Source: Bugula neritina
Lineage: Eukaryota; Animalia; Bryozoa
DNA: 64,000 nucleotides
Assembly: GCA_964035545.1 (NCBI GenBank)
Contig: OZ037770.1
Location: forward strand, 2,636,662 to 2,700,661
Reading direction: 5' to 3'
Below are positions 322 to 47,170 of this stretch, piece after piece. The first letter of the stretch is position 1. Each line of letters starts with the position of its first letter. The position numbers were made by a program, and so were the translations under genes. The notes beneath the pieces were generated by a model. It worked only from the letters and a program-made list of their open reading frames with translations. It searched no databases and was not told the origin of the DNA.

Positions 322-2525
322 TTAGAAGGTATACTCTCTAATAAAGCCGTGGAAGCCAGGAAACAGGTAAAGTCTTTTATGGTAAGGAAGAGTATTTGAG
401 ATTATAACCAGATTTCTGCTTCTCTCTGAATCTTCATTTGGATACAGTCTTCTGACTAATTTAGTCTGTACCTGTAGAGTAAGTAATAACTATTATAATA
501 TTGTTTATTAATTCACTACTAGCTGTGATAACATGCAAATCTCAGCTGGTAAACTAATTTATCCTATTATGTCTGCTACAGTGATGTGATACATTTACTT
601 GTACTATATAAAATGCAGCAGAACAGTAAGATTAGTTATTAGCAAACTACAAAAACATAATATTATATTAAGGAGGAGAGAAGGTCTCTATATAGTGAGC
701 TAGTATACTAAAGAAATTAAAGCAACAAATGCTAAAATATACCATTTTAACCGAGGAAAGCCAGAAGTTACACTTTGTCGCTCAAAATAGTCCAATGCCT
801 CTTTCAATTACCACAAAAGGGTTTGAACATATAGCAATGAAATAAATGATATAATGTGAAATACTTTCTTTAATGAAAGTTCAAAGAGCCAAAAGGTTTG
901 TTAGTCTTAAACTCACCTGCTGAAAGATGGTGTAGAGATCACGGTGACAAGCATGTTTGTATATTGAAGATACTAAAGCTCTAATCATAGGAGATCCATA
1001 ATCAAGATGTCTCTCTGATGCTATAATAAATGTATATACAGCCAAAATTCAGGTCTAGCAAAGCCAAGCCTAAGACATTCTAGTTATAGTGAAACATAAT
1101 TTTAATCTAAAAGTTCTGGAACATATTTTACTCATTTCAGTTTAGAAACTGGTTGAAAACACAAGCTTATACAAAATGTGGGGGCAATACAATAAAAAGC
1201 AAATAATTTTCTAGATTATACATATCAGGCGCTGCAGTACAGAAAAATTAGCAATAATCACCATCTCTTACTGTACTTACAGCAGACGTTACTCTTCAGA
1301 ACGAGAAGATCATCAACATTCAGTTCAGTTCTAAACTTTTCTATTCTAGGATCTGGGGGTAAGGCAGGTCTGATGGGTCTCATTACACTGGGTGTTTTGG
1401 GGTATTCAACATCATCATTAGCTTCAGATGGCAATGCAGAAGAGACAGCTTCAGTTTCTTTTTCTGGAGTTGCTGCATGACCTGATCTGCCTGAATTGCT
1501 GTCAATATTTGCTACAAGAACATCATTTAAACTTGGTTAGTGCAAGCAGAAATTAGCACTCAGACACTAAATGAATGCGGAAAGTGCTTTTCACAGAGTT
1601 TTGTAGATTACTTTCACTACTCAACAAAAATGACGGTTTCCATTAAAAAACAGTGATTACCTCCACTGCTGGCTTCTAAGATGACAACTTTAGGTTTTCT
1701 CCTCATTCCGTCGAAATACAAAGGAGTGAGTAAATCATATAGTTTGGTGAGGTTGACCTTCTCAAGGTCAGTTCCATAGATGCAGTTATCTTTTCCACCA
1801 TGAGTCATAACAACCAGTATATGACATCCTAGCTTTTTGTTTTTCTCTTCTTTTACCTCAGATTTCACAGTAGACAATATCTCCTAGAATATTTAAATAG
1901 TATTTTTAACCAAATCCTCAAACATTCTGAATACCAAAAATTATAACTATAATTATTGTAACTCAAACTTTATAAAGCCACATGGTTTTCAAAAAAACTT
2001 TTTAGTAGTAAATGATACAATCATTTGGTAAGATAATACATTGGCAAAGTCAATCAGCTGTGCTGTGATATTAACTTGTAGTTAGAGGAGAACCTTTCTT
2101 TTAATCAGGTTTAACAAAAAAATGAACAGTGGTTTAAAAGCAAACATGCCAAGTTTTCTACCAAGTTTGAAAAATCCTCACAATATTGCAAAATTGTGTA
2201 TAATTATTCTTTTATCTAACATAAAAATTATTATAAGTGAGATCAAAAAGGACTTAAAATAAGGTTTTGCGAAGAGGCTGTGAGTTTTGTTCTTATAAAC
2301 AACTAGCAGGCTACTTTGAAAGTGAAAACTGTTTCTCTCAGTCTGAAAACACACATTTGCAGCAAGGTCTGTGTGCGTCATAACATCAAACTTGAGAGAT
2401 TTCAACATGGCAGACATATTCTCAACATCAGCATCTGAACCTTCCCTGCATAAGTCTGGTCTTTCAACAAAGTTCTTGTTGTTTATTATAAGAGCTCTTC
2501 CTCTCTCTCTGCTCATACTGAACAC
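322..2525 (-). CDS. Caspase-like p20/linker/p10 domain (5 exons); catalytic Cys replaced by Ser
   Basis: Motifs [32 protein letters not shown] (catalytic His), [12 protein letters not shown] (canonical KPKxxxxQACxG), [34 protein letters not shown]. Confidence 0.9.
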
Positions 2526-5500
2526 CTGAATACAAGTGTATTTAGAATATAATTTTATAAGTGTACACACACACACACATGCGCGCGCACGCAAACGCGC
2601 ACACACACGCGCACGCACGCACACACACACACACAATAAATTAATTATCTGCAAATTTGGTTATCTATAACTAAAAGGAGCCTGTGGAAGCTAGAATAAT
2701 CTAGTGAAGTTTGAGGGTTTAGTGTCCAAAAGGGAACTGCTAAAACTTATGTTCATTAGCTGACACATTCACCTTGTCAGTATTTGAGAAGAGTTGCTTT
2801 ATCCGTGGGTTGGTTGTTGGCTTTAGTTCAAGTTGTATTAATTTCAGGCCTTCCTTGTTCTCTTTATCAGGGTACAGATTGTCATCATCTTCCGAGAGAT
2901 CACTCAGATCATCATCTGATTTGTCTGCAGTCATATGATTGGGGTGATTAATGCCAGCATTTGAAACCATAGACAACATATCTTGCTTATTCATCAGAAG
3001 AAGCAATAAATTTTTTTAAAAAGGCACAATTAAACATATTTTGAAAATAAATGTATAGCCAAATAATTGCAAAGCCTATATAATTTTTCCAATACTGTGG
3101 GTTCAAAAAGTAAGTTCTGTCCTGAAAGTTTACCGTTTGATTTGTTCTGTTCACTTCGGAGTTTGAGCTCAGAAAGGAATTTTTTAAATTTATTTGTTTC
3201 TGTTTCAGACAAAGTCTCACCTAAAAAATACAGACAGCATTAGTTATACTATATCTTGATGAAAGTCATTAGACTAATATGTGATAAAAAAGAGCTATGT
3301 TTGTAAGTTGAAATTTTATAAATTAAAATGAAAATGCAATAAAGTGCTGTGTAGCTTTCTAATTTCCATCTATTATTAAAATTCATTAATGCAGGACAAA
3401 GAATTAGATATGATTTGTTACTGTAAGACTATTTAAAATATATTATCAAGAAATTTAGAAGTGAATCATATGTGTAAACATACATGGGTGAAGTAGAGCA
3501 CTGGGTATCTCTTCACCATTACACAGTATCTTCGAAGATCCATGGCACTTGTCGACATCGGATGGCAGTCGGCTTTTCAAGGAACGAAAACACCATTTAG
3601 GATGCAGAAGCTTTTCAGGGCAAGAAACCCCTAGTATGAGACAGTGAGCACAAATGCAGGCGGTGACTGGTCGACTAGCAGTCCAAGTTTCCATCACATG
3701 TCTGAGGATGTTGTTGTTGGCTAAAATGAGCTTCTCCCACATCCTGGAAATGTGAGCAGAATCAGATGACACATAGAGTAAGACTCTTCTAGAATCATAA
3801 TCATGTGTCAGCTGTGTGTAAATTTCATCTTGATAGACATTAACTCCATTTCCCTTCACCTCCATCGTAGCAAACTCGTCAGAAAATAGTTCTAACAAAC
3901 CAACTGTCATTTGATGGTACACATGCCGTGGTAATGCAAGACCATTGAATTGTGTTTCGGTATGTAACAGCAGATCCTTGGGTGATGTGTATGAAACACT
4001 GTAATGATCCTTAGCAAACTGTGGAATGATGAAGTACGGCTCATGAACATTTCTTTCCAGAGGGCCGTACAACAAACGGAATGTTTTAAGCAAGCAAACG
4101 GCAATTTCAACATCATGAGAGCTTTTGAATAAAGTTTCCTCTGCAATCAAATATGTTAAAAGAGATATCATCATCAAGCCTGTTTTTTCGAAGTGATTCA
4201 CAAATTCTCCAAACTCTTGTTTCTCCAGTCTCAACTCTTCACTAGAAAAACATGGTTTAAAATGATCAACTCGACTCTTCCAGATGTCTGGGTCATGATG
4301 ATACAAAACACAGAGTAGTTTGGTAACTTCTGTGATCTTGTGAAATATGTATGGTTTAAGTGCTTCAATATTTTTATACCACAAAACTTTGCCGCAGTCA
4401 TGCATGTATGTGAGAATGGTATCTAGCTGGTCTGGCTCAACTTCAATGCCTGCTTTTCTCAGTTCAGGCAAAATAAACCAAAAAGAGCTAAAGGCTCCAG
4501 GCAAAGACGAAACTTTTTCATTCACTTTCTCCCAGATCAGTGGCAAAGGCTGAACAAAGTGCTGACTACTTTTAAGAAGTGAGCTCTTTATCGAATCAAA
4601 CTCAGCATACTGGTCTTCCTTTCCAATTTGATAAGTATCTTTACTGGCAAACACCTTTCCACTTGATGAATTAAAATGCTGAATCTTTGCAAATTCTCGA
4701 TCTAAACTTTTTTCTTCATCAAGAACTTCTTTGCACAGCTGTTCAAATATCTCAAGAAAACTATCTTGAAGCTGCTGAAATTTTTCGCTCTGAAACTTAT
4801 CTTTGTGTGTGAAGACTAGTTTAGGTGGGCCAAGAGATGGATGGGTAAGATAGAGGTGGGACATGAAGTTAAAAGCCAACTTTCTGACAGCCTCTTTGTT
4901 TGTAAACTTATTTGAAATCTGATCAAACTGCTCCATGTTGACTACAATTACCGGTACGCAATTTTGTCTCAGTGTTAAATGGTATGTGATATGGTAGACC
5001 TCTTGGCCTCCCATATCTATGAGACGAAGAGTAGTACCATTCACCTCTACCTCTTCCACATTAAACACTTTTGTGGTTTCATCCTGTTTTGCATTAGGAC
5101 TTCTGTCAGTCAGAACTCTTTTCCTGTCACTGCTTTGTAATGTTTGGATTAAACTGGTTTTTCCTGCCATTGTGTTCCCCAAAACAACTATTGTAGCAAA
5201 TGGCAAGTTTTTACCAGCACCTTTAGCCAAGTCTTTGTAGTATTGCTGAACAGAATTTAATCCTCTTCTGCATATTTCTAGCGGTGGAGATGTAAGATCA
5301 AAACATCCACCTGTATCGAGAGACTGAAGTTGTGTTAGCTGTAGTATGTCAGGGTTCAAGAATGTCATGGAGCTGTTGTAGGATATATTCAGTGTGTGCA
5401 GATTACTCATTGTGCACACTGAAGGTGGGAGACTGGTGAAGTTATTAAATGATATGTTTAGTCTCTGTAACTTCTGTAGTCTCTGTATTCTAATAACATA

Positions 5501-8500
5501 TAATATTTCTATTATCAGCATAAACCAGAGGTAAGTGATCTACTATATGTCATGAGCAAACAATGATAATACACCAATACCTATACACAGAGCAGTGATA
5601 AGCAACAGTGACTTGTACAAAGCATGCTGACATAGTAGGCTACAGTAAATAAATGTCATTTTAAAAATGTGCCTAATAGTACAGAATATGGGCATTGTTG
5701 CAATCGTCATATTATTATATGTTTAAAATTTAAAATAATATTATTTATAAGAATTCATAGAAAATTATGAATCTATTCAGTTCCAATACTAAATACGTAC
5801 TGTATATACTGCCATTTAAACATAACATAATACTATACATCACACAAAAATATAGTTATATATGTACACCAGTTAGTATCTACATGTTCATACTGATCTT
5901 CTACTATAGATGTAATCAAAAAGACAAAAGTAATTTTATACTGCGGGACAGACAACATTATAAGCATGTGATATAAAACAGTTATTATCTCATAAAAGAA
6001 GCGTTGTGCTGATTTTGTAAAATGTGTTCAGGCGATTTCAGATGAAACTATAAATTTCTCTCCAACAATAATATATTTATTAAAACGATTTTATAGTGAT
6101 ATGAGAGTATATTATTATACTCTCATATCACTATAAAATCGTTTTAATAAATATTCACTAAAATCTTGTAAACATAATTTTATAAATTATACAAGCTAAC
6201 TTGCTATCGTGAGCTACAAGTTAATGAAATGCCATTATCATGTTCCATATCTTGAAAGGCAGCCTATCTTGGTTCTAAATATAAATAAATGTTAAAAAGA
6301 ATGTATTGTATTACCAGAAACAAAATACATTTTGACTGTTAATGCTGAGAGTGGAAACAGACAGCTGTTGTAGCGAGTGCCAAACACCCAAACAATATTC
6401 GAAATTGTAATTATACTTTTTTGTTCTTTCCTCCTAGCCTTGCAATATATTGTTAGGTTATTAATTTTCTAAAACAAAGCTAAAGTAGATGCTCAGTTCT
6501 GTGACTATCTTGATGTGTATTATATAAACCAGAGCAAAGACATGCAGCAACAAATCTTCCGACATCTTTTAGCCTACTTTTGTAACATAATTTTAATAAT
6601 AATAATTTGATACAATCAAAAATAATACTAATCCTGCATGTATACTGAGTCATGAATATTTGAAACGCTAGCACAAAAGAATATTAAAAAGAAACAGCCT
6701 GCATGTGGCAGTGATAATGCTGTGAAGAATTTACAGGTTTTTGAAAAGCAAGAATTGGTACAAAACCAGAGCAGAATCAGTACTGGATAATGAAATAGTA
6801 AAACTCTTGTGAGATTTCAACATACACACCGACAGAGTGAAGCTATAGGAGGCTGGATATAGTGACAGTTAACAAGCGTTACATTGCTAAAGTAATGCTC
6901 ATGGAACTAGTCCTCTCTTGTGACCATAGAGCAAAAGAGAGAAAATCAGAGTAGATAGGAAAATATTATAGGATTCAGCAATAGAAACAAAATTATTTTG
7001 GAAAACATCAAGAAAGGTCATTGCTATTAAAATTGGGGCCCTTGGAGCTGCATACAAGACTCTAGATTGGATGGTACTACTTGGAGTAGCTGAGAATAAA
7101 TACTCCATAATTCAGCAGACAACATTACTTATAGGATCAGCTCACATCTTGAGAAAAATAGAACTAAGCTGAGGATAGAAGGTTATGCCAGCAAAAATAG
7201 CTATATATACATAGCAATAATAATAATAATAATGATATAGTCCTATTATACACAACTTTTATAAATGTACGTCAGTTAACAGCCGATACCGCTGAAAACT
7301 TAGTCTAAAACAAAAAAGATTTACCTAACCTATTATTGCGTGTAAACTCTAAGTACCTAAAAACTTTCACTTTTAATTTTATTAAAGGCTCGATGACTTT
7401 CATTGGGTGCCATCCCAGATAGACGCTTCCCAGTAAGACCATACGCTAAATTTTTTACTTGGACGCTTTCCCCTTATAGAGGCTTTCCAGCTAAACACTA
7501 TTTATTTATCTCGGTACAAAAGATATTGTATGTGCTATTTATTTAAATATTATTGAAATACATGCATAATGTAATGGATTCTCATCCTCGATTAGTTCCG
7601 AAATAACTGCGTGTATTGTGATTACTGTTGCGTATCGTTTTGGATGCTGTAATTGTAGTAAGCTAGCTTGATAATGCCCAATTTTTGTGATTACTGTTAA
7701 AGCTTTCAACATAATGTAATTTTGCTAAAATACGCATTCCGGAGTTATTTTCTTTTGTGTTGCTATTTTATCGTTTAATACTGATACTGGAAATTTGTGG
7801 TTCGAGTTTCGGCTCTGCCGAATTTTGGAGCTGCTGAATTTCGGACCACAAAAAATCTTTTGTCTACATGTTCTTTTGTTCTCTGTGTATAAAAGCAGGC
7901 GAGTTCCAGTGTAGATTCAGTCTACTACTGGAGCTCGCCTGGGTAAGTCGGAGTTATTTCTGCTACAATAAAACACTTTTTGAACTTTGCTACCTCAACC
8001 TCTCTTGTTCTGCACTAAGTTACATTCAACCCACAAGTTTATCACATTGGTGGCAGCGGTGGGATTCTGAATACTAGTGTAAGAAGAACAAGATGGCTCC
8101 AGGGGGTGAGGAGGCGACCCCTGGAGCAGCAGCAACACCAACCCTCACTGTGGAGGCTTTGGTGACAGCCCTCCGAGAGTTGCAGGAGACAGGGCAGGCG
8201 CCACCTGGTGACAGGTACCGCCTCAGTCCCCTCGATTTTCGGAGGTGACAGGGATGTGGAGCAATTCATCCGGGAGTTCCAGGACGTGGCCACCATCGCT
8301 GAATGGCCAGCTCGGGCGCGCGTCCTCTAACTCAGTGCCTGTTTGACAGGCTGGGCCAAGAGTTTTGCTCTGGGGCCCGATGAAGCACACATCTTGCGTG
8401 CCCTAAGGACCAGGTTTGGCATGACGTCAGAGGAAGCGTCTGATCGCCTACAGGTCATGAGAAGGAACAAGAGAACATCATTGGAGGACCACGCCAATGA

Positions 8501-11500
8501 GGTGGAACGCTTGGCCCAGGCTGCTTTCAGCCATGCCACTGGACCGGAGAGACAGCGCTTGGTGTACAACGCGTTTTTCCAGAGCATAAATCATCCTGAC
8601 CTCCAACGCTATTGAATGGCTGCCAAGGTGGGCAGCCTGGACGAAGCTCTGGAAACGGGTAAAGCCTATTTCCAGGTGGAGGAGCTTTAAGGGCCAAGGT
8701 TCACCGCCCGCCAGGTAGTCGAGGATGAGACCACCATGCCTGCTAAACCTCAAGTAGCGGCGGCAGCAACTGAGTCATCGGAGCAGACGCAGCTCACCAT
8801 GTTGATAGACATGGTGAAGGGCCTGCAGGCTACGGTGACTGAGTTACAGCGAGGCCAGATGGGTAGGCGGGCTCCCAGAGTACGGGACGACCCTACCCGC
8901 CCCTTTCAGCTTACCTGCTGGGAGTGCGGAGCACCAGGACACGTGCGGAGACACTGTCCGAAAGGCAATCTGCCTTTAAACAACCAAGGCTCACGATAAC
9001 TTCCGCCGACCGTGGGCCCCAAGCCAATCCCATCCAGGACAGGGCTCAGAGGAAGACTGAGAGGACCTCGATGGAGCTTGCTGATACTAAGTGGAAGGCG
9101 CCACGGAGATCTCGGAGACTGAAAGGTCTGCTCGATCCTCCTGCCATGCAACTCAAAGCCCGGATGAAGTCAACAGACTCAGGATGGCAGACACCTCGGA
9201 GATCTCGGAGACCGCAAGGTCTACCCGATCCTGCGGCCTGGCCACTCCAGAACCGGTTCGTGGGGTTGCCCGAAGAGGTTGTGGAGGAGGACTCAGCTTA
9301 TTCACAAGAGTACCCCAAGCTGCCCTCCCGACCTCAGAAAACCCCCGTCGTCTCTAGGACGAAGAGGAGGCCCGCTGTGCGGACCCAAGTTGTGTCTCCC
9401 CCAGAGACTAACCGCTCCAGGAGCACCCAGCCGTACGAAAGCAGCTACTTCCTGCCCGGAAAAATTTCAGGCAAAGCTGCCACATTCCTACTGGATACTG
9501 GGTGCACTACAAACCAGCTGAGTAGGCGTCTCTTTGACACTCTTGGTGCCCGAGAGCGAGCAAGCCTGGAGCCGTACGAAGATGCACATGGTACGGACGG
9601 ATCATGTATTCCTTTTTACGGCGTTATTATGCTACCTGGACGCGTCCGTGATCAAGTGATTAACGAGACGTTCATAGTCAGCCAGCTGAAGGAGAACGCC
9701 ATTCTGGGATTGCCGTTTCTGGAGAAACACCAGTGCCGCATGGATTTCCAGAAGTCAGTGGTGGTGATGGCTGGAAGAGACCTTGTCTGTGTGGACAAGT
9801 TCGGCAGGCCCTTGGTGGGCGGAGTCCAGGTAGTGCGGGACTGCACGGTTCCGGGGATATTACAGGCAACTCTCCGCTGCAGAGTCAACTGTAAGGAGAT
9901 CGCCAGCCTGGGAGTGGTTGAGGGAACGCACGGAGCGATCCGACTAGCAAACAGCCTGAATCGGCTAGACTGTCGGCAAGAGCTCCTCGTGCAGTGCATC
10001 AACCCCTTCACGAAACCTGTCCAATTATCGGCTGGAGCACTAGTGGGGAAGTACCACTCTATCCAGGAGGCAGATGTGGGGCTGGCACTAGAAGCAGTGG
10101 CCGACACCCAGGGAAACCCCCCCCGCACTAGCCGAGGAACAGTCCCGGAGCATGTGGCTGACCTATACGGTGGAGCGAGTGGAAACTGTAAGAGTAGTAC
10201 TGAACGCCAAGCACTGGCTCAACTACTCACGGAGTACAGTGATGTCTTCAGTCATGGCGGTGGAGACATGGGGCTGAATAAGGTTATCTCTCACGAGATA
10301 CCCCTGGCAGCCGGCACCACTCCCATCAGGCAGCCCACCCGACCTCTAGGCCCAGAGAAGGAGAAGGAGGTGAGCCGGTAGGTGGAAGATCTTCTTGATC
10401 GGGATCTGATTGAGCCTGCCCACGGTGCGTGGAGCTCTCCAGTAGTCCTGGTCAAGAAGAATGATGGTAGCTGGAGATTCTGCGTAGATTACCGCATACT
10501 CAACAGCGTTACCATCTAGGACGCCTACCCTCTCCTACGGATAAATGAGTCTCTGGATACCCTCGCGGGTAGCAAGTACTTTAGTACTTTGGATCTGCTT
10601 AGCTGGTACTGGCAAGTGCCCCTCAGTCCTGATGCTCAGGACAAAGCAGCATTTATTACTCAGGACGAGCTCTGGAAGTGGAAAGTACTGCCATTTAGAC
10701 TAACGTCCGCCCCGGCAACTTTCCAACGACTCATGGAGCAGGTCCTCAGTGGATTACACTGGAAGACCCTCCTAATTTATCTGGACGATGTCATTGTAAT
10801 CTCCCCAGACTTTTCGACTCATGTCAGTCGTCTGCAGGAAGTCTTTGACCGTCTCCGGGCAGCTGGACTGAAGCTGAAGCCCTCCAAGTGTGCTTTCCTG
10901 CAGCCGGAAGTCACGTACCTAGGCTATGTGGCTGGCTGTGACAGGGTCGCTACCGACCCGGAGAAGGTACAGGCTGTGAAGGAGTGGGCTGTCCCCCGTG
11001 ACCTCCCTTAGTTGCGAGCATTCCTGGGCCTAGTAGGGTACTACCGGCAGTACATACCTGGCTTTGCAGGAGTGGCTCAGCCGTTAAATCGGCTGACCGC
11101 AAAGGGGGTCCGGTGGCAGTGGACACAGGAGGAGCAGCAGGCATTCGACCACCTCAAGCAACGGCTAATGGAGGCGCCAATTCTGGCGTACCCTGATCCA
11201 GCCAAGGAGTACATCCTGGACACCAACGCAAGCGACCACAATGTGGGAGCTGTTCTGTCTCAGGTCCAGGGTGGAAGCGAGGTGGTTGTGGCTTATAACA
11301 GCAAGACTCTCGCGGCCGCCGAGAAGAACTACTGCACTACTAGGAAGGAGCTCCTAGCAGTAGTCAAGGCGGTCAAGCACTTTCGGCCATATCTGTAGGG
11401 GAGAATGTTCCGATTGCGAACAGACCATGCATCACTGATATGGCTGTGTAAACGTGTGGAGCCTTCGAGCCAGGTAGCTCGTTGGCTGGAGATTCTTGCT

Positions 11501-14500: not shown

Positions 14501-17500
14501 AACATTTTCGAACTCTACTACCTCAACCTCTTTTGTTCTGCACTAAGTTACATTCAACCCACAAGTTTATCACAATATTTAAATAAACTTGGATCAATTG
14601 TTTGCTATTTAGCACATGAATAAGTTCCTTTGGTCCGCATTAACTTATTAATTTTGCATATTCTATAGCTATTTCTTAGTGTCTGAAAAAAAAATTTTTT
14701 TTAATAAGTTTTCATTAAAAATAATGTCTTTTATTAATGTATTACCGTTTTTTGCCCCACAAAAATGGGGGGGGGGAAAGTGGGCTATTATTCCAGGTAC
14801 TTTATATTAGCCATTATAGTTGTTAGCATATTAGCTATTTAGCAATCAATACACCGGTTATATACATTATTATGGTACCAAAAGAAAAAATAGCGTCTAA
14901 CTGGGAAACATCTATCTGAGATGAAACCTTTCATAGGAATCTATATAAGCCAATTGCCAAAATAACAGCATTCCAGTTATATCCTATAATTATCTGGTAT
15001 TTTGCTTCAAAATGACAGGAACTCACTGAATTTGCTTGCAATATTGCACACAATACCATCTTTTTAGTAATCAGTTCTACCCAAAACCTATCAACAATTT
15101 GTCTCTGGGGGAACTGGCATGGTGAACACGTTACATGAAGTTATGGACCTATGATATAATGATCTTTGAAATTGGCTGAAATTTCTCGACAAAGTACTTC
15201 TTGACAATACTTCTATAAGCAGTAAGGATTCTACAGGTTCACAAAAAAGGAGGTATAAATATCATATTGCAGTTTTGGTTGTGTTGAATATTTTACTGTA
15301 ACATACAAGTTAACAAATGTTTTAAATGGTAAGTTTATTGTAAAACACAAACCTCTTAGGTAGAGTAGATAATTTGCAGTTTTGCATATTCAACTCTTTA
15401 AGTGATGTGAGTGATGACACAACTTCTGGTACTTCGTTGAGAGGATTCCTTCCTATGTCTAGTTTCTCCAACTGAGTCAGCTGACGTAAACTGTAATATA
15501 AAATATGTTAAATATGTATATAGTCTACCTCATCATAGTATTGTATAATGTATATAATGTGTTTAACCAGGTATACAACTACAAAAATATAGCAATAAAA
15601 TTACCGTAGCATATGGTACGAGCAAAGAAAAAGCACGAGGGTAATACTGTGATAATATATAATAAAAGACGCAGAACGTGTTCTATGATTTACTACACAG
15701 CTATATTATATACAGAGTATAATTACATGGGTTAAGATAACTACCATGTAGTTATGAAAGATTATAGAGCAACTATATTATAAATATTTTACTTCTTTAT
15801 AAATTTTTTATTCAACTTATCATAAAAATTGGCTACTTATTCTAAGTAAAGATATAAGAGGGTATAATTTTTCACCTATCCCAGCTTTGTTCTGTTCGGG
15901 TAGCTGGGATGATAGTGTATTCTAATGGATTAGAACTATTAATTACTCAGTAAATACTAGTAAACTACAAATGGCGGCTTATGATAGGTAGAAACTATTT
16001 TAACATAATTATATAACATACTGTACTCTGCTTGTGTAGTCAATAATATATAAACACATGCGTGCAATAAATTTATTACCACAAGACAGATTCAATGCAA
16101 ATGAAAAAGACTAATGAGCAGTTTTTAGTTACTGCATGCATACTGGTAAAATACAAATGGCTGCTCTATTATTGATTACAATTTCTTTTCTTGATACAGT
16201 ACGTATTACATAATGGCATACCCTAAACGCAATGTAATTTCTAGGATAGATTGAAGTATGATATGTATACTTTCAGAAAATCAATTTATGTTTTTAACAT
16301 AGTAGTATATATTGGCATAAATTATTACTACAATTGATGAATATATAAATATATAACCGAGTTGATTTTTCAAACAACACAAAATGTGTGACGCACAAAC
16401 CTCTCTGGCAGATTAGATAAGTCACAGTCCCACATTTTCAACTCTTTAAGTGATGTGAGTGATGACACAACTTCTGGTACTGTGTTGAGAGGATTGCCTC
16501 CTATGCTTAGTTTCTCCAACTGAGTCAGCTGACATAAACTGTAATATATAAAGTATGTGATACAAGATATGGTCAGCTACTGCTATATTCAAAGAATGGA
16601 CACTTAGCAAGCAACGATTCAATAAGCTTTAGATACTAGCTAAAGATACAAACAGTTCTATCCCAGATAGATGCTATTTGTTATTGTGGTACCATGATAA
16701 CATATATAACTGGTGTATTGATTGTTAAATAGCTGATATGCTTATAATAGCTATATAATAGCTATTATGAAGTATCTGGAATAATAGCCTACGTTTCATG
16801 GATTTGCGTGGGGAAAAAACAGTAATATATTAACAATAGACATTATTTTTAATGAATACTCATTAACTAAATATTTCCTCAAACAAAAATAAGTATAGAA
16901 TATGCAAAATTGATAAGTTAATGCAGATCAAAGGAGTTTGATTATAAATATAGCAGATAATCCATCCAAGTTTATTTAAATATACATTTATTTCAATAAT
17001 ATTCAAATAAATTGCACATAAAATATATATTGTACCAAAATAAATAAATAGCATCTAAGTGGGAAGCGTCTAAGTGGGATGACACCCTACAAACTGCTTC
17101 TTTAGTAATTACAAAGTCTTTGTTTGCATAAAAATAAATAATGCCGTACCTTAGAATTATATTGTTTTCAAGATATAGCAAGCTGTTGAATAATTTCAAA
17201 AAAATTATGTTTATATTTCAACTGCTATATAGTATAATAACAAAGACATACTTTAACACTGCTTGGTAAGATCTGTGAATTAATGAATGTTTGAAACAAT
17301 ACAAAACCTGTGACGCACAAACCTCTCAGGAAGATTAGATAATTTACATTTCCACATATTCAACTCTTTAAGTGATGTGAGTGATGACACAACTTCTGGT
17401 ACTGTGTTGATAGGATTGTCTCCTATGTATAGGTTCTCTAACTGAGTCAGCTGACATAAACTGTATTATAATGAAGTGTGTGATATATGCAATTTATTGT

Positions 17501-20500
17501 ATCATAACAATACATTCTGCAAAATTTGCGATGTACAATATTCAAGAACTAAATTCAATGCACAGGTAAAATTCTCCAGAATGTAATAACGTGGTAATAT
17601 TTTTATTAATTTGCAGCGTCTGAGACAGTTAATTACCCTGAATATCACGTGCATGATGTCATTAGAGCAGTTACAATTAAGAAATTATATTATATATAGA
17701 TATAATATATTTAGGAGGTTGTAGATATTGAGAGTGGAGAGAGCTTTACTTTAATTACACGCGGTTAACCTGTTAGTTTAGTATAGATGAGACCTCACTT
17801 CATATTGTTATGATTTTCAGAATTAGGGTTGATATGCAATCCGGAGAGTCTATTTATTTGCTAGAGAACTTCACCAGGATAAGTCGAATAAATACGAGTA
17901 TATTTTACACACAAGAATACATCACAAAAACTATACAAATACATTCAGCAAATCTACACATCTATATCATTCAGCACTCTATCTTCGACTAACTAACAGC
18001 GGGAAGACTAACTACTGCTACTAACTATCAGTGTCGCTAATTGGCTGTCCATTGTTCCGGGTCAATTACGTGACCCTATGCTATAGTAGTGGGGAAAATA
18101 ACATTTCCCCGTATTACGCTGCTGGTAGCTCCACAAGCCACCACACCGCCCCCACCAGCAGAAAGCTCTCTTTCTGATACAAAAAAAAATATTTTACAAT
18201 TAACCACATACATCAGTAGACCAAAAGAAAAAGACATAACATATATATATATATATATAGATACACAATAACAGACATAATCATTATAACGGCATGTCAC
18301 ATACAATTGGCTAGCTATAGAAAGAGGATACCGGCTAGCTGTAGTGTTGGACAAGAGGTCGAGCTGTCAAGCATTTACATGATAGTCTTGGGCCTCCAAG
18401 AGGGTGAGGCTTGCGGATCATTCCGGGCAGAAGAGCCAGAGTCAGTGTTTGGCAAGCCGATGTTTGGCTTGGCGGGCACGTAGCTTTCTTTTAATCCGGC
18501 CGACAGAGCCTTTTAACTGATAAAGACCCGTTGTGGTACTAAGTAGATCTGGGGCTAACTGGGTGAACTCAGCCTGCACGTGAAGGAGACGCTCCTCTAC
18601 AATGGCCAGGCGAGTAGGGTCTGGGGACGGCGTCCGCCTTCGACGAGGGGGGGAACCTGGAGATTGGGTCCGCCTGCTAGTTGAAGGGCGGGGAGACTTA
18701 CTCTTCTTCTTCAGGGTAGGCAAACTCTTCGGGGGTATACACAATCTGAGGGCGGTCGGACACCAATGGGGATTGTTGCCTGGCGTAATCTAACACATGT
18801 TGAAAGCCGGAGGTCAGGACGGCCAATAACATTGCCTTCTTCACTAAGGGTCGTATTAGAGTCAGGAATTCCGGGTAGAGCTTAGCATCTACTACGTAAT
18901 TCTCTTCGGGGAAACGGCCCGCCGCTCGGTGTCTAGTGACGGAATAGGGGTAGACATCATTATATCCGCAGGGGCAGACTGTGAGTAAGAAGTGGGCGTT
19001 GACATGTAGCCTCATGGAGCGGTGAGAGGCACACTCTTCGTCACAAATCTGGCACTGTTTCCTTCCTTTGGGTCCCCAGGCTGTCTCTATTTGCTTCTCC
19101 GTCTCCGGCGACACCCACCACCAGCGGCGGCGCAGTGGCTCAGGCCGGTTGCCATTGGTGTACTCCTCGTGATGCGGAGCGGGAGGTGCTCTATCCCGTA
19201 CCCTGGTTGTAACGGTCGAGTGTAACCTGAAAGAGTTTCAACAGCGTTAGTATAATACACTGCAGTGTTGTCGGCTTGGACAGCCTGGCAACTTCTCAGT
19301 CAGTTAACACTCGTAGAGATTTATGGTAGTGAGTAGTTGGATAGAACACGTATTGCAATGAGATTGTAAAATCTCTAAGTCAAACTGAATTCCTACCACA
19401 GTAGTTCACTAACCTATCTCCAGCTCAATTGACTCAGGTGAGTCGGAGCTGAGTGATGCAATCTAGTTTCCATATCAAGATATAGTTAACTCACCCCACG
19501 ATCCGTTGTCGTACGACATACTGAACTTGTGAAATGGTTTGAACTATTGACTAGGAACACGTCTGCTCTTGACTGCATCAGCATAAGAAAAGATCGAGCA
19601 ACGTGGTTGGGGTGGGTGACTAAGACTTTGCGCACCCAGCGGATGAATTTTGTTTCTAAATCCGCCGATACAAAAGTTGATATTTCCGTGGTGTTGACAA
19701 CTCCCACAATTGCTCGATACTTTTCCCGTACGGTTCCCCGCTAGACTTTCATACGCGCCGCTTTTAATGCAGTCACATACGAAGTCCTTTAAATATGATG
19801 GGGGTTGCCTCGTACGTTGTCCCCGCTCTAGGGGAGGTGACGCACTCGCCGGTGTACTAGTAGGGGCCTCTGGCGGCGTCTCTACTTCACTATTAGTGGT
19901 CACTTCTTCCTGTTCTCTGGATGGAGCCCCTCCCTCCGTGGGGGTTTGCACTTCCAGAACCGGCTCGGTCTCCGGAAGTGATGGAACCAGACTTGGCGCA
20001 GGCGGTGGCGGACGCGCTTCTGCAGGCAAAAGTGGTCGCTCATCCCTCACCAAATCTTCTGCCCGCGGAATGACCACTTTGTACTCAGGTCCATGCCGCC
20101 GTCGCCCGCGCATTGTTGTCTGCCTCCTGGGCTCCAACAACGGGGGGCTTCTCTCACTGCGTCAGGGCTAGCCCAATACGGCTTCAAGCGAGCCTCATTC
20201 TGGGTAGACACCTGTCCTGAGCGCTCAATCTTGTAGGTATGGGTGGGCATAGCCTCGAGTATTACGTAGGGTCCCACGAACTTAGGCTGTAACTTAGCCG
20301 CCTGTCCGCGACGCCTACGGTAATTGACCATCCACACCCGATCTCCTGTCTGGTAGAGGGGTGGTTCCTCGAAATCCTCATGCCCAACCTGCCACTGCTT
20401 TTCTTGCGGTATTTTGTGTGTGACCCTCATCCGTTCCACTAGTTCACTGGCATACTCGTGGACCGAGCAGTCTTGCTCTGGAACATGGTAGGTAAGATGG

Positions 20501-23500
20501 TCAGAGACACGAGTCTCTCTCCCGAGCATTGGGGTCTCACCAGTACTGGTGTGTGGGGTGCTACGGTATGCGCGCATGATTTGCGGCAACACCGTGTCCC
20601 ATTCCTACTGACTGCGTCCGAGGAGTAGACTCCGGAGCGCATCACCTAGCATCCTGTTATTGTGCTCCACCACCCCGTTACCTTGGGGATGGTAAGGGGT
20701 GGTCCTGCTCTGATTTACTCCCCAGAGGCGGCAAAGGTCGCTCATCAGTTGAGACTGAAACTGAGCGCCGTGATCAGAGTGTATCTGTTCGGGGAGCCCG
20801 AAGTAACAGAATACATGTTGGTCTAGCGCCCTGGCCACTGTCAGGGCTGACGCATCTGGGATAGCCAGAGCGTCTGCCCACCTCGTAAAGTGGTCGGTCA
20901 ATACTAAGATCCAACTATTGCTTCTGGGGGTTAGGGGCATGGGTCCGACCAGGTCGACAGCTACTACTTGCCACGGCCTTCCAGCATATAACCTCCGCTG
21001 TCTCGCTTCACTAGGGGGACGGCCATGCTTGCTGGCCTGGCAGATTTCACACTGTTTTACCCTGAGCCGGACATCTCGCCCCATTTTGGGCAAATACCAC
21101 CGGAGTTGTAATTTAGAGATCACTCTCATGACTCCTGCGTCAGCCTGTTTGTGAGTGTCCCAGATTAACTCAAAGCGTATGGCACTAGGGCAAACCACCC
21201 TCTTCTTCTCTGGGTGTCTGCCGTTGGCAGCTAGAGAAATGGTCAGCAGACCATCCTGCCCGATCCTCAGCGAGTCCCAACGCTGGCAGAATAGCCGAAA
21301 AGCGGCACATCCCTGCCGTATTTGCTCCTCGCTGGGTCGTCGCCGTTCCTTTTTGGCCCGATATATGTCTGCCACTCCCCCAGGCAGCTCTTCCTGGAGC
21401 TTCTTCAGCTCCCAGACATTATCGGCCGATACAGGATTTGCGCGGAGGTTTTGTACAACCTCCGGGGACTCGTCAACCTTCTGCTTGAGTTGACCCTAGT
21501 CCCAGTCAAACTGCGCTCCCTGGTGAGCCAGTGTCTCCAATTCACATCGCGGGGGACCTCCGTCCCTCCTCTCGATATTGAGACACTGTTTGCAACCTCC
21601 ATCAGGTCGGCGGCTCAAACCGTCCGCATTGCTGTGTCTCTTGCCCGGTCGATGTTCTATCCGGTACGAGAACTCAGCTAGGATTTCGAGCCACCGGGCG
21701 ACCTGACTGGAAGGCTCTGCTCTCTTGCACAACCAGATCAGAGAGGCATGATCCGTACGCAGCCGGAACTTTCTGCCGTATAGGTATGGTCTGAAGTGCT
21801 TCACTGACTTGATTACTGCCAACAGCTCCTTGTGGGTAGTGCAGTAATTTCGTTCAGTGGGTGAAAGAGACTTGCTGTAGTAGGCTACTACTACCTCCCA
21901 GCCTTCTTGCACTTGAGACAGCACAGCACCAACGTTCTGGTCAATGGTGTCAGTGTCGAGGTTGTACTCCAGAGTAGGATCTGGGTAGGCCAAGATGGGT
22001 GCCGTCAGTAGGCAACCTTTGAGGCGGTCGAACGCTCCTTATTCGACCGGGGTCCACTGCCACGTCACTCCCTTTGCGGTGAGCCGGTTCAACGGCTGTG
22101 CTATGCTCGCAAAGTCTGGTATGTATTGTCTGTAATACCCTATCAGCCCCAAGAAAGCCCGAAGTCCGGTCAATTCTTGGAGGGTGACCCAGTCTTCTAT
22201 CGCCCGTACCTTTTCAGGATCCGTTGCCACGCCGTTTCGACCGACAACGTGCTCCAGGTACTTGACCTCCGGCTGCAATAGAGCGCACTTGGAAGGTTTG
22301 AGCTTCAGACCAACACCTCGGAGTCTCTCGAAAACCTCCCGCAGAGGACTGAAATGTGTCTCGAAGTCTGGGGAGATCGCGATGACATCATCAAGGTAGA
22401 TCAGCAGTGTCTTCTAATGGAGCCCGCTGAGGACTTGCTCCATCAGCCTCTGGAAGGTGGCTGGGGCGGAAGTTAACCCGAAAGGCAGCACCTTCCACTT
22501 CCACAAACCATCCCGTGTGATAAACGCCGCCTTCTCCTGGGCGTCGGGACTCAGAGGAACTTGCCAGTAACCGCTCAACAAGTCTAACGTACTGAAGTAC
22601 TTGCTGCCGGCTAGGGCGTCCAATGACTCGTCAATACGAGGTAGAGGGTAGGCGTCCTGTATGGTTACGCTATTGAGCTTGCGGCAATCCACACAGAACC
22701 GCCAACTGCCGTCTTTCTTCCGGACAAGTACGACCGGCGAGCTTCACACACTGTGGGCGGGCTCGATGAGGCCGCGGTCCAGAAGATCCCGGACTTGTCA
22801 GCTAACCTCCTTTTCCTTCTCCGGCCCCAGCCTGCATGTGGGTTGCCGAATAGGGACCGTCCCTGCAGTCAGCGGTATTTCGTGTTTGACAGCTCCAGTC
22901 AGTCCCACGTCTTGATCTCCGCTGCTGAACACATCACCGTAGTCGCGTAGCAACTTCGCCATGGCTTGGCGTTCCTCGTTGCTTGCGCAGCCACCACAGG
23001 CTGTCTCATATAACTCCTGGATGTGTGTTGGGACCGCTCCTCGCCCCTGAGTAGGGCGTTGAGGGGGTGCCTTCGTCGCATCTCCCAGCGACGGGCCCGC
23101 GTCTTCTTCCTGGACAGAGTGGAACCGGCCCAGCATAGACCCAGCTGGGAGCTTGATGGGCTCAGTGAAGGGATTGACACATTGCACTAAGATCTCTCCT
23201 CGTTCAATCAGTTGGTTTAAACTGCTGGCGAGTTGGATCCTTTCGTGCGCACCTTCGACTACCCCGAGTCCAGAGATCCGGCTATTGTTCACCCTGCAGT
23301 GAATGGTAGCACGGGAGCGGCCTGGCACGATACAGTTTCGTACCAACTGCACGCCTCCCACCAAGGGGTGGCCGAACTTGTCGACGCATGCGAGTGCTCG
23401 CCCGGACATTGCCATCGCAGATTTACTAAAATCGATGTGACATCCGTGCCGTTTCAGGAATGGCATTCCAAGGATGGCGTCCTCCTTGAGCTGACTGACG

Positions 23501-26328
23501 ATAAACGTCTCTTGGATCGTTTGATCACGGACGCGTCATGTCAGCTCAATTATACCGTAGAAGGGAAGGCACGACCCGTCAGTCAGGGTGCCATACTCCC
23601 CCTCGTACGGTTCCATCTTGCCCCTGACCCTAGCGCTGAGGGTGTCAAAGAGTTGGCGACTTATGAGGTTCGTGGTACAGCTCGAATCAATTAGGAAAGT
23701 GACAGCTTTGCCTTCTAATTTGCCGGGCAAGAAATAGCTGTTTCCATGGGGCTGCACCTGAACTGTCTCTTCGTGCCTTGCTCTCGCAGGGAGTACCTCC
23801 CTCGCTCTAGGTCGCGAAGGAGGTCGCTTGGGATGGTGGTAGATTGGCCTTGGAGGTGAGCAGGCTAAGTTTTCAGCTACCTTTGCTGGCTCCCATCCAG
23901 ATTCTTGTGGAGGGGCATAGAGAAGTCAGCGGCGTGGTCGGAGCCTCTTGCTGGTCCGTCGTGGCTGTCGCCACTCTCGGTTGTCAGCACGTGGTACCCG
24001 TCTGGGTGACCTACGTTTCTTCTTCCCTGAGGGGTTCATCGCCGGCCCGCAGGAGGTGGGAACATCTGCGGGCCGCGGTAGTTTAACCCCGAAGTTAGGA
24101 AGGGACAGCACCTGCGGAAATGTCTTTGGTTTCCGCATTCCCAGCAAAAACTGACCGTTTCCCCCGGTGGCGGCGCCGGTGGTCGTACTGGCTCAGAGTC
24201 GGTACCTACTGGGGTTTGGGGTGTCAGTGTTGCTATCAGTTTGGCCAGCATGTCGGTCAGTTGAGTGACCTTCGATGCGGCCGTTAACTGAGCCACGGCA
24301 GCCGTCGTGGAGGGCTCCGCCTCTCGCTCCGCTGCCGTGTTCGCGCGGAGTACCTCCACCTGACGGGAGTTCCTGCAACTTTTATGCATCTGGTTTGCCA
24401 GGAGATAAGCTTCTCCCTCCGCCAGAGCATCTTCAACGGTGGTGACTCCCCTACCTAGAAACTGGTGGTGGAGACCCAAGTCGTTGACAGATTGTATAAA
24501 GGCGTCAAGAGTATACCTCTCAGGGTTAGCTTGGAGCAGATCGCTATACGCAATCTGTGCCAGTTTCATGACCGTGGCGGCATGTTCTTGCAGCGGGGTG
24601 TGAGGATCACGCCGCAGCCTTTGTAGTCGGGCCCTGGCATCTGTAGCAGAGATGCCGAAGCGGGCCCGCAGAAAAGCAAAGATACTATCGATGTCTGCAC
24701 CTAGCCCATAGGGCTTAGCCTTGTCTATCAATGACATTCTGAGCTTCAGCAGGGCCACCCGAGGGGGCCACTGGGCGACGTCCATTACGTCACTAAACTC
24801 TTAGATGAATTGCTCCACCTCTTCTTCGCCCGTGAAGGTGGGCGCTTTTAACCGGTAGCGATCCTTGTTCAGCTCTCGAGGAACCCTTCGCTCTTCTACC
24901 ACATGATTCACAGGCATAGCATCGTTTTTACGCTCACCTTCTGCTGCCGGTGATGCATTCCAGCGTTTACAGTCTCCATCGTGGATGTACACTATCCCAC
25001 TGCTGCCACCACTGTTATGATTTTCAGAATTTGGGTTGATATGCAATCCAGAGGGTCTATTTATTTGCTACAGAACTTCACCAGGATAAGTCGAGTGAAT
25101 ACGAGTATATTTTACACACAAGAATACATCACAAAAACTATACAAATACATTCAGCAATTTTACACATTTATATCATTCAGCACTCTATCTTCGACTAAC
25201 TAACAGCGGGAAGACTAACTACTGCTACTAACTATCAGTGTCGCTAATTGGCTGTCCATTGTTCCGGGTCAATTACGTGACCCTATGCTATAGTAGTGGG
25301 GAAAATAACATTTCCCTGTATTACGCTGCTGGTAGCTCCACGAGCCACCACAATATTGCTATGTAGGTTGATGTCATAATTTTGTAATTAGGTGCATTTA
25401 AACATATGAAATATAATAGCGTTCTGTAAAATTTTGAAGACTTTATGGTACTTTTGTATTCAGCTACATAAAACATGCTTTAAGTGATGATATCAAGTAA
25501 CAGCATACACATTGTGACACTGTTTTCAATTCCTACATCTGATTCAGCTGGTATATAGATACAATGCTTTACGTATTATACTATTAGTTATACACTGTAT
25601 GATTATATTATGTGTAAAAATATGTTTTCGCATTCAATTAGTCAAATATTTTGTAAACAAGAAATAATGTCATCTACCCTCTATACAGTTGCTGTATTAT
25701 AAACACTCACTTGTTCAGACTTGCTCTGTCAGTCAGGCTAGAAACATGTAGATACAGGGCTTTACCGGCAATCTCTCCAATGTTGTCGGGAATTTCCCCT
25801 TCCAGTTTGAGATGTGTAATGTCATAACTCCCAACTTCACGTTTCACCTCAGCAGTAGTATATGACTTGGTACCAGCAAAAATTGTATCTAACCAGCCTA
25901 CAGCAGGCTGTCCAGAATGTCTAAACCAAACACTCATATTCTCTGTAACATTATACAGTGTGATTATTACACAGTGCTAGCAGGTGATGTCTCTCATTCT
26001 GATCTACTGATTGAATATATTTATTATCTGCATGCTGTGTATCAGTCAGTCAACTATCACAGCAATAAAGAACTGAATTACACATTTTATTATAGCAGCT
26101 GTAGGTTTAACAAAGTAAAAACTTCGAGTTATAAAATAAAATGAATAAAATCAGCAATTTCCTAAAGTCATATATACCTGATTTAATATCTCTAGAATTA
26201 TGCTGATTGTGTTTCAGTATAAAAACATCTCAAATCTCCTTTTTATGTATTACATACAATGATGTTAAAATAATGTAATATATTTTGAGCGTTTGCAATA
26301 TTTCAAAACACTCACCACCAGTTGCCAT
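322..26328 (-). CDS. LRR-Roc-COR (ROCO, MFHAS1/MASL1-like) protein fused to a C-terminal caspase-family (C14) domain, ~1260 aa, 13 exons
   Basis: Exons 5'->3': 26316-26328 (MATG), 25711-25942, 17323-17460, 16401-16538, 15353-15490, 3484-5489, 3134-3220, 2773-2924 (alternative in-phase acceptor near 2981), 2355-2525, 1661-1883, 1281-1511, 917-1020, 322-471 (TAA). All introns are GT-AG with compatible phases (1,2,2,2,2,1,1,0,0,1,1,0); total 3783 nt with no internal stop. Confidence 0.8.
2564..2634. repeat. (CA)/(CG) alternating purine-pyrimidine microsatellite in a caspase-region intron
   Basis: acacac...gcgcgcgcac...acacac. Confidence 0.9.
3484..5489 (-). CDS. Large exon: last LRRs + LRR C-cap + Roc GTPase + COR + Cys-rich tail
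   Basis: [16 protein letters not shown]-type LRRs; [12 protein letters not shown] cap; P-loop GNTMAGKTS; G3 DMGGQEVY; G4 THKD; COR PLPLIW...[13 protein letters not shown]; YFIIPQF; CICAHC. Acceptor ttattag at 5490, donor gtatgt at 3483. Confidence 0.92.
6073..6154. repeat. Perfect inverted repeat, 39-bp arms with 4-nt loop
   Basis: atatttattaaaacgattttatagtgatatgagagtata-ttat-tatactctcatatcactataaaatcgttttaataaatat. Confidence 0.95.
6700..7233 (+). mobile_element. 5'-truncated, decayed non-LTR retrotransposon 3' end (restriction-like endonuclease, R4/Dong-like) ending near a (TAA)n tract
   Basis: Frameshifted remnants [49 protein letters not shown] match the RLE consensus WDFxIQTD..RPDIV..IGALG..GTAxILRK; taataataataat at ~7218-7233. 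Confidence 0.65.
7570..8046 (+). repeat. 5' LTR of Gypsy-1
   Basis: Direct repeat of 14109-14574; followed by the PBS. Confidence 0.95.
8975..9018 (+). other. -1 programmed ribosomal frameshift signal (gag-pol) of Gypsy-1
   Basis: T TTA AAC slippery heptamer, 6-nt spacer, stem GGCTCACG/CGTGGGCC; the pol ORF is in the -1 frame relative to gag. Confidence 0.8.
14109..14574 (+). repeat. 3' LTR of Gypsy-1
   Basis: Direct repeat of 7570-8046. Confidence 0.95.
15353..15490 (-). CDS. LRR cassette exon C (138 nt, two 23-aa LRRs, phase 2-2)
   Basis: [45 protein letters not shown]; acceptor ttacag, donor gtttgt. Confidence 0.88.
16401..16538 (-). CDS. LRR cassette exon B (138 nt, phase 2-2)
   Basis: [45 protein letters not shown]; acceptor ttacag, donor gtttgt. 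Confidence 0.88.
16655..17087. mobile_element. MITE copy 2 between LRR exons A and B, inverted relative to copy 1
   Basis: Ends tcccagatagatgc / gcgtctaagtgggatgacaccc; flanked by tacaaac(ag/tg) direct repeats. Confidence 0.7.
17323..17460 (-). CDS. LRR cassette exon A (138 nt, phase 2-2)
   Basis: [45 protein letters not shown]; acceptor atacag, donor gtttgt. Confidence 0.88.
17806..18145 (-). repeat. 3' LTR of Gypsy-2
   Basis: Direct repeat of 25013-25352. Confidence 0.95.
18442..19519 (-). pseudogene. Candidate accessory gene of Gypsy-2: C2H2 zinc finger + SP/R-rich segment + coiled coil, possibly spliced
   Basis: [21 protein letters not shown] and VCPCG..TRH in ORF 18698-19114; frameshifted continuation 18442-18744; ATG exon 19495-19519 with GTGAGT donor and ctttcag acceptor at 19227. 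Confidence 0.55.
25013..25352 (-). repeat. 5' LTR of Gypsy-2
   Basis: Adjacent to the PBS; followed by ATAT. Confidence 0.95.
25711..25942 (-). CDS. N-terminal exon of the ROCO-caspase gene (divergent LRR N-cap)
   Basis: Open frame ..[36 protein letters not shown]; acceptor gttacag in phase 1 matches the MATG micro-exon, and donor gtgag in phase 2 matches the LRR exons. Confidence 0.65.
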
Positions 26329-35621: not shown

Positions 35622-37222
35622 CATTGACAGCCTACAGCATACATGCATAATAATTAGATACTGAACACTGGGCTAAACCTTAAATTGATCTTATAGTATA
35701 CAATGTACTTAAAATAATCATATGTGAATTAGAAAAACTGGAAGTACACCTGCTGCACTATAGACAGACCTTTACTGACAAGACTGCAAAGTGAAGTGAT
35801 TTAGCTGAAATTAACTCTGCTAAACAAACAAAGAATTATGTTGTGCTGAGGCATTGTCAATAGATTGTAACATAGTGAGATATGATTCAGCTAAGTGCTA
35901 ATGTAAAACAGGGAACATTATATTGGCAGAAATTCAATAGATTGCCAATTTGTGCTAGAGGGTACTATATGTTATTGTGATAGCGCAGAGCGGCAACCGT
36001 ACTATAGGAATGTTATAATTAGTCACAGGAGCGTAGCTAGAACCACCATATGAAAAATTTAGAAAATTGCAGTGAAACTTGCAAAATGGTGTATGTTTTT
36101 ACTAAATTGTGAAGAGCATAAACAGAATTTCAAAAAACAAAAAAAGTATATTAGAGAAAACATATCAAGGAATGTCAAGTTTAACTTTTAGACTTTATAA
36201 AATGAATCCCCTGTGCTACAGCAGTGGAACATGGAGGGTGTAAAATTTTACTTATTATGCAACAACTTTCTCAGAAAATTTTTTATTGAAAAATTAAAAA
36301 AGTATATGAAAGAGGAATGCAAGAGCTATTTTTTCATGTAAAATTTATTAATGTGAGACAAAAACTGTTCGAGCTATCCCCTGGAAACCGTTTATATATA
36401 ACATAAAGCAGTGCCTAAATCTGGAAAGTAATGACCTTAAACTAACTGTGCTGGTGGTCAAGCTAGTCGGCTCGTCGGCTGCCGCCGCAGCGCGTGTACA
36501 GCCGACTTGGCTGGTGACGCCGACGACACCAACACGTCATTGTCGGCCTCAACTTGCTGTACTGTTGTCCCAGGCCAACACGTACCGTCGGCTTGGAAAT
36601 ATGCATTCCTAAGCCTGAGAGCTCTCTCCACCGTCTCAACCTCAGCTACCAGCAGGTGTTACCTTAAACCAAGGTTGTTAATAGACTGGAGGAAAGCATC
36701 CAGTGGCAGACTCTGTCAGCCATTTGCAGCATATGCCGTCCTCCATCGCTACTAGTTTGACTGGTTCTTGACGGGGTATGTTCTCCTCGTCGGCCATCTT
36801 TTACTTCCTGGCTAGGAGCATTAGCAGTAAAAAGATTCAACCGCAGCTACCACTGTTGTAAATTTACGCTTCACTTGTAATTATCGGGTCTATTTATGCA
36901 AAACCATTATGCCAGGTTTACAATTACCAACACTTTATTCTACTTATTAAACACACTGAATAAAACTGTGCAAGTAATAAAACACAATACATAATCAAGA
37001 AGAGAATATACAAAACTTTACACTAACAGTTCCCAATGTTATCTTCTGGCTAGTCAAGTAGACTAGTGCCCAATACAAGTAGCTCAGCTCTGCCCACTAC
37101 TAATTGCTAACAGTCCATTCATTGTATGGCCAGTGTGTACGAGACTGGTTTAGTTGATTGGCCATCCGCTGGCACCATCACACTAGTTGATCTGCGATGC
37201 AAAATAGATCATGCCATCAGTT

Positions 37223-37769
<547 letters not shown>

Positions 37770-39662: not shown

Positions 39663-39673
39663 AGGCTATAGTA

Positions 39674-39966
<293 letters not shown>

Positions 39967-44079: not shown

Positions 44080-44565
44080 GATGTGTTCTAAAATAAATAA
44101 TAAGTAAAAGGTGTAATAGAAAAGATTCAAAAGAAATGTTTATATAAAATGAATCACTCTATGAAAATATTATTATAAGAGATGTCATTAAAAAAGCTGT
44201 CTTTTTAACAAATTCATAAAGTTAAATCAACATCCTTATGAAATTGCTTTTAATCCAAACAGCTATGAAATAAAACAGAAATGATATTTTATTTTAAAAA
44301 AGTCAAAAGCAGTTTCTTCAAGGTGAATTAGCTACACAAGTTTTTATTGAAGATATCTATCAGTTTTTCTAATATCATATTTTATCTGTCCAAAAAGATA
44401 GAAAATTGACTTCACATGAAACCCTGCATGTCTTGACAGACTTGGAAAGTATTTCAAGATTTTTTTAATCACAAAAATTTGATTTAAAGCTATAAGAAAA
44501 CTGAAATAATATTTGCTATATTTTAAATAATGAAAACTGTCACCAGATAATATGCATGCACTCAC

Positions 44566-46932: not shown

Positions 46933-47170
<238 letters not shown>

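Follow-up and report, generated by a model that had tools for sequence, protein, structure and literature searches.

According to Kaur et al. (2021), the effector at the C terminus of bacterial LRR-AP-GTPase-COR proteins can be a caspase (PMC8195603), and invertebrate LRR-Roc-COR proteins, some of them with Death, CARD or TIR domains, have been described from Aplysia (PMC9334734) and Trichoplax (PMC4104024). For the switch itself, the model drawn from C. tepidum Roco and LRRK2 is that the GTP-bound protein is monomeric and the GDP-bound or apo protein dimeric, with hydrolysis favouring the dimer (PMC6337361); for caspases, a pairing of dead and live domains has been proposed in coral caspase-X (PMC4715348). 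Here, we compare these systems with a gene from the bryozoan Bugula neritina, found in a stretch of 64,000 nucleotides of contig OZ037770.1 (the window, to which all positions below refer). The first-pass annotation of the window had described this gene as a fusion of leucine-rich repeats (LRRs), Roc, COR and a full caspase, and had proposed for it a role like that of an NLR. Judged by its sequence, the locus is one pseudo-caspase member of a family of about 110 genes.

Structure of the gene and its domains

The gene lies on the minus strand and consists of 13 exons, each bounded by canonical AG/GT signals and joined in phase to its neighbours. Together they give 3783 nt encoding 1260 amino acids with one terminal stop; the exons were searched one by one against Pfam, and the joined protein was built and compared by script. 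Exon 1 (26316..26328), 13 nt with the ATG start, is the least certain of them, although its phase and splice signals agree, and exon 2 (25711..25942), which has a homologous exon at related loci, encodes the N-terminal region, probably an LRR cap. It is followed by three near-identical 138-nt cassettes of phase 2-2 with two LRRs each (exon 3, 17323..17460; exon 4, 16401..16538; exon 5, 15353..15490), which share 86-91% nucleotide identity. Exon 6 (3484..5489; 2006 nt) holds the last LRRs, the Roc GTPase and COR-A/COR-B, exon 7 (3134..3220) a helix after COR, assigned in part from the model of a homologue (see below), and exon 8 (2773..2924) an acidic linker that leads into the caspase. The large subunit of the latter begins, with the Arg motif of the S1 pocket, in exon 9 (2355..2525) and continues in exon 10 (1661..1883); exon 11 (1281..1511) covers the inter-subunit linker and the beginning of the small subunit, exon 12 (917..1020) more of the small subunit, and exon 13 (322..471) its end and the stop codon.

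Two introns house Gypsy-type LTR elements with pol broken by stops, which we regard as passengers: one in intron 5 (approximately 7540..14570, plus strand) and one in intron 2 (approximately 17780..25350, minus strand), with LTR pairs 92-95% and 97% identical, respectively. Upstream of the gene, a broken Gypsy-type pol fragment with pieces of reverse transcriptase, RNase H and integrase lies at 27700-30040 (minus strand). The window further contains a short frame rich in Gly whose beginning resembles a signal peptide and which may encode a small secreted protein (43885-44139, minus strand), exons whose translated frames resemble a malic enzyme gene (about 53400-63700, minus strand), and long dinucleotide and minisatellite arrays (37200-37800, 39650-39970, 46900-47180 and 52800-56700).

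Exon by exon, Pfam recognized LRRs, Roc (E = 3e-8) and, weakly, COR-A (0.015). The Roc motifs are intact, with the P-loop GNTMAGKTS (G1) at residue 324 (5153..5179, minus strand), the G3 motif DMGGQ at residue 378 (5003..5017, minus strand) and the G4-like motif THKD at residue 447 (4799..4810, minus strand), and G1, G3 and G4 are present in nearly all of the 29 paralogues compared. In an AlphaFold model of exon 6 (pLDDT, 88.7; pTM, 0.87), the LRR-Roc-COR part is matched by that of LRRK1, C. tepidum Roco and LRRK2 with E values of 1e-22 to 1e-17, from which we conclude that the COR domain is real; the model also matches the isolated COR structure 3dpt. No Pfam family for a kinase, CARD or DED was matched in the ten exons scanned (all but exons 1, 4 and 7) or in full-length homologues. 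Thus, the exon count, the LRRs, the Roc motifs, the COR domain and the lack of kinase, CARD and DED all stand as first annotated. By its Roc motifs and the COR that directly follows Roc, the protein is assigned to the ROCO family; with Roc-COR rather than NACHT or NB-ARC as its central domain it is not an NLR, and neither is it a kinase of the LRRK or DAPK type.

The caspase call fared less evenly. Both exon 9 (9e-10) and exon 10 (1e-6) matched Peptidase_C14, the fold is complete with large and small subunits, and the catalytic His is kept (THGG, His1053; 1802-1800). However, the QACRG motif reads EASSG, so that the catalytic Cys is Ser at residue 1097 (codon AGC, 1670-1668), a substitution which the first-pass annotation had missed. 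Exchange of Cys for Ser is the standard way of inactivating caspases, and on this ground we rejected Ser1097 as a working nucleophile. This copy is accordingly a predicted pseudo-caspase, catalytically dead, and because the Cys is replaced it cannot be the executioner, or caspase effector, that it had been taken for. Both Arg of the S1 pocket (equivalents of Arg179 and Arg341) are present, and the third pocket residue, Gln283, is Glu in this copy; among the paralogues, the equivalent of caspase-1 Gln283 is Q, E, H, L or V, hinting at differing specificities.

As a stand-in for the fused Roc-COR-caspase part we folded a homologue from Watersipora, with which the model of our gene aligns end to end. 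Its caspase has caspase-3, CED-3, caspase-9 and caspase-8 as best PDB matches, and the fold matches CED-3, caspase-9, caspase-8 and caspase-3 at a TM of about 0.8. In this model, a single long helix comes after Roc-COR, and an acidic, disordered linker then leads to the caspase, with no CARD or DED prodomain in the helix and linker between COR and caspase. The acidic motif SD[LVI]SD in the linker is conserved in Bugula and Watersipora and could be a site of self-cleavage or phosphorylation.

That the LRR-Roc-COR and caspase parts form a single gene is well supported by comparative data. Several RefSeq models from Watersipora subatra are single chains of LRR-Roc-COR-caspase (e.g., XP_067947674.1 and XP_067948342.1), the B. 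neritina models in GenBank labelled CASP8 are fused too, and the same layout is found on metagenome contigs at 32-38% identity and on one further contig. In the one Watersipora gene tested, whose protein is ∼30% identical, the stretch that begins with the Roc-COR exon and ends with the last caspase exon is interrupted by eight introns, every one of which lies at the same aligned position as its counterpart in our gene. One could instead read two adjacent genes here, with the ROCO ending at a stop near 3455, since read-through of the exon 6 donor reaches a stop within a few codons and some Watersipora models do end after COR. Yet 30/30 paralogues retain the phase-1 GT donor that follows COR, exons 7 and 8 between the two parts are under purifying selection (dN/dS of 0.24-0.38), the intron positions agree with Watersipora, and intron 6 (263 nt) is devoid of AATAAA and ATTAAA, the last a weak check as the 3' flank also has no canonical signal. 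We consider a pair of separate genes highly improbable.

A gene family in Bugula neritina

The B. neritina protein KAF6029336.1 has a 97% match in the source genome. A search of this genome with the Roc domain, the paralogue check that the first-pass annotation had called for, returned 110 distinct Roc-COR loci, which are spread over eight contigs and form clusters on C6 and C1. A same-strand caspase exon lies downstream in 110/110, nearly always within 9 kb of Roc and at 11-16 kb in three loci; the pairing was made by eye from coordinates, and one exception was then checked directly. With every locus linked and the introns shared with Watersipora, the claimed ROCO-caspase fusion appears sound. 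The 110 loci, independent assemblies and the occurrence in two genera led us to reject a chimera of the assembly, and spliceosomal introns and a chromosome-scale contig to reject prokaryotic contamination. For about two dozen related caspase exons (C2, 30.51-30.55 Mb; C9, 9.32-9.41 Mb; others), Roc gave no match in the vicinity; these exons may belong to more divergent ROCO-caspases or be free caspases. Elsewhere in the assembly, small contigs (C22-C307) carry small-GTPase genes that read through TAA and TAG, and rarely TGA, as in the ciliate genetic code, and these contigs are probably ciliate contamination.

The catalytic Cys is kept at 97 of the 110 loci. Ser replaces it at ten loci, all on C6, and Ala, Tyr and Leu at one each; counting one Cys-bearing locus in which His has become Leu, 14/110 are without a catalytic residue, the His having been read in part of the copies. 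One metagenome contig carries a distant homologue (positions 8302-8547 of that contig) whose catalytic His is replaced by Gln, so dead versions may recur outside the B. neritina genome. Genes for the NACHT and NB-ARC classes are almost absent from this genome: one weak, partial match was obtained for NACHT and none for NB-ARC, in a search that domains split by introns could escape. We found no published description of a bryozoan ROCO-caspase family in the literature searched, which left most subscription journals outside its coverage, and neither Bugula nor Watersipora is among the listed entries of the Kaur 2021 supplement. The bryozoan LRR-Roc-COR-caspase family is real and apparently undescribed.

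Selection acts differently on the parts of these proteins. With a dN/dS of about 0.2, Roc and COR evolve under purifying selection, and this copy gives values of 0.20-0.27 against its paralogues in the Roc, COR, linker and caspase exons (0.22-0.27 in the caspase). Ser-type caspase domains are as constrained as their Cys-type neighbours (0.23 vs 0.25) and are not confined to a single group of the caspase tree; the dead domain is therefore being maintained. The LRRs follow another pattern. A cassette search gave 347 candidate sites in the genome, and all 41 exons examined, which were chosen by their similarity to exon 4, are 138 nt long, AG/GT-flanked and free of stops. They vary mainly at the six residues that the xLxx strands expose on the concave face (pN of 0.40 vs 0.045 elsewhere), with 38 different six-residue surfaces among the 41 exons, and the concave codons give an omega of 6.0 (LRT p about 3e-6) vs 0.68 for the framework, where gene conversion can inflate the LRR omega and mask recent decay. 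These values indicate that the concave surface is under diversifying selection. With such a surface, and with NACHT and NB-ARC almost absent, the NLR-like role first proposed is well supported for the family.

Further, the Roc and caspase trees disagree, and pairs of loci whose Roc domains are 94-96% identical bear caspase exons only 43-46% identical, which would mean that modules have been exchanged or the Roc part converted. At C6 2.53-2.61 Mb and C1 33.8-35.1 Mb, near-identical Roc-COR backbones occur with very different caspase modules (QAC, HAC, EVC and ETC types). Within exon 6 of 30 paralogues, synonymous divergence is 0.34 in Roc vs 0.75 in COR, the lower Roc value suggesting gene conversion of the 5' part of the exon.

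A putative GTPase-gated caspase receptor

Our main reading, to which we give a probability of about 0.6, is that the locus belongs to an extensive bryozoan family of intracellular receptors, each a single LRR/Roc-COR/caspase chain, which work in the manner of NLRs and apoptosomes, and that this dead copy pairs with an active paralogue. A ligand on the concave LRR face would shift the monomer/dimer balance of Roc-COR, and this shift would bring two caspase domains together; in the Cys-bearing paralogues, such proximity would start proteolysis, cell death or inflammation. Since GTP favours the monomer in C. tepidum Roco (PMC6337361), the resting state of the family could be a dimer, and what sets off signalling may be that GTP is hydrolysed or lost. 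The Ser copy cannot cut, yet its LRR face is variable and its GTPase intact, for which reason pairing with an active paralogue is most plausible: most likely it would act in a heterodimer, as cFLIP does with caspase-8, either as a sensor that switches on its partner or as a brake on its neighbours. On a larger scale, we speculate that the NLR/apoptosome system of cheilostome bryozoans has for the most part given way to a combinatorial set of about 110 GTPase-gated caspases, each a single chain, in which LRR cassette exons, Roc-COR backbones and caspase modules of differing specificity are reshuffled and dead copies act, in pairs with active ones, as sensors or brakes, a proposal that we consider less likely than not.

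Other roles can be imagined for a dead caspase in this setting. It might be an integrated decoy or a non-proteolytic scaffold that baits inhibitors from pathogens or binds an adaptor, the signal leaving through Roc-COR. In keeping with this, losses of the Cys lie at more than one point of the caspase tree and vary in form (Ser, Ala, Tyr and Leu, besides His to Leu) while the fold is conserved, and caspase modules have been swapped among Roc-COR backbones, much as integrated domains are exchanged in plant NLRs. However, about 87% of the paralogues keep the Cys, which points to proteolysis as the default output of the family, and the caspase exons are under purifying, not diversifying, selection; we regard a decoy or scaffold as unlikely. 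The same switch might also serve allorecognition or programmed turnover of zooids (fusion/rejection, polypide regression) instead of the sensing of pathogens. Bryozoans are colonial and recycle their polypides, and a diversifying LRR surface with a caspase output would suit any system that tells self from non-self. Against this, a family of some 110 paralogues with cassette LRR exons is less like single polymorphic allorecognition loci and closer to repertoires of pathogen receptors, such as the brown algal ROCOs (PMC11378527), and so we judge this use quite improbable.

Still less credible is that the locus, in an array shaped by birth and death, is an unexpressed young pseudogene or is carried along neutrally, having lost its Cys and gained two LTR elements. 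The insertions in its introns and the stops in a few neighbouring copies would be expected of such an array, but the frame is open over 1260 codons, the exons from Roc to the caspase show the constraint given above, and the ten Ser copies, at a dS of about 0.25, are still constrained.

If the receptor reading is right, this would be a large family of animal receptors in which Roc-COR, a GTPase, takes the place of a STAND ATPase and the protease is part of the same chain, and it would give a first concrete handle on innate immunity or allorecognition in bryozoans. It would also make a long-standing question about ROCO proteins and LRRK2 directly testable, namely which nucleotide and oligomeric state is "on", as the caspase is a dimerization-dependent reporter naturally fused to Roc-COR and the family offers natural live and dead versions of it.

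Comparison with known systems

The statement that no animal family with an LRR-Roc-COR-caspase architecture had been characterized survived our literature searches, whereas the novelty of the architecture as such holds only in part, given the same order in bacteria and a Roc-COR-caspase protein in a sponge (PMC8195603). Among the bacterial proteins, LRR, AP-GTPase (Roc), COR and caspase follow each other in an order identical to that of the bryozoan gene (e.g., OQX07365.1), with the effector in a variable C-terminal slot and a predicted counter-invader role; these proteins are known from prediction only, and the caspase is one of at least 24 effector types (PMC8195603). The bryozoan caspase is of animal type, unlike that of the bacterial system, as its best PDB matches show, and for the bryozoan Roc-COR, matches to invertebrate MFHAS1-like ROCOs reach 105-160 bits and those to solved prokaryotic Rocos 31-39 bits. 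From these matches, we infer that the bryozoan fusion is probably independent of the bacterial one. The sponge protein XP_019855546.1 (AP-GTPase+COR+DED+TRADD-N+CASPASE) likewise combines an animal Roc-COR with a caspase in a single predicted chain but differs in having DED and TRADD-N between COR and caspase and no listed LRR, and it is a single catalogue entry (PMC8195603).

By profile score, the nearest relatives are MFHAS1/MASL1 and the invertebrate LRR-Roc-COR proteins, with which the family has the LRR-Roc-COR core in common; the nearest named Roc-CORs outside the family come from amphioxus, Lingula and Owenia, and among the best 150 matches no ROCO from outside the family carries a caspase domain. 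The Watersipora proteins are themselves named "MFHAS1 homolog" in databases, a label that, with "CASP8", has concealed the family. In the ESM Atlas, only leads under 0.9 were obtained, the best being a cyanobacterial COR+CHAT cluster.

For the LRR cassette exons, the closest parallel is in brown algal ROCOs, which are likewise expanded, have phase-2 LRR cassette exons under diversifying selection and have been proposed as immune receptors (PMC3341825, PMC11378527). The algal exons hold one LRR per 72 nt and the bryozoan ones two per 138 nt, and the algal proteins are mostly without an effector, a caspase being nowhere mentioned in the 2024 paper (PMC11378527). As regards the lost cysteine, cFLIP beside caspase-8 and coral caspase-X (PMC4715348) are cases in which a dead caspase domain is retained beside active relatives, as in the bryozoan copy. 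DEDs recruit cFLIP, and in caspase-X both domains lie on the same chain (PMC4715348); unlike either, every bryozoan chain comes with an LRR sensor and a GTPase of its own, and the His is retained. Finally, NLR inflammasomes and the Apaf-1/CED-4 apoptosomes share with the proposed receptor the logic of a repeat sensor, an NTPase switch and activation of a caspase by proximity. They do so with a ring-forming STAND ATPase that engages a separate caspase through CARD or PYD, whereas in the bryozoan protein the switch is a Roc GTPase and the caspase is fused to it.
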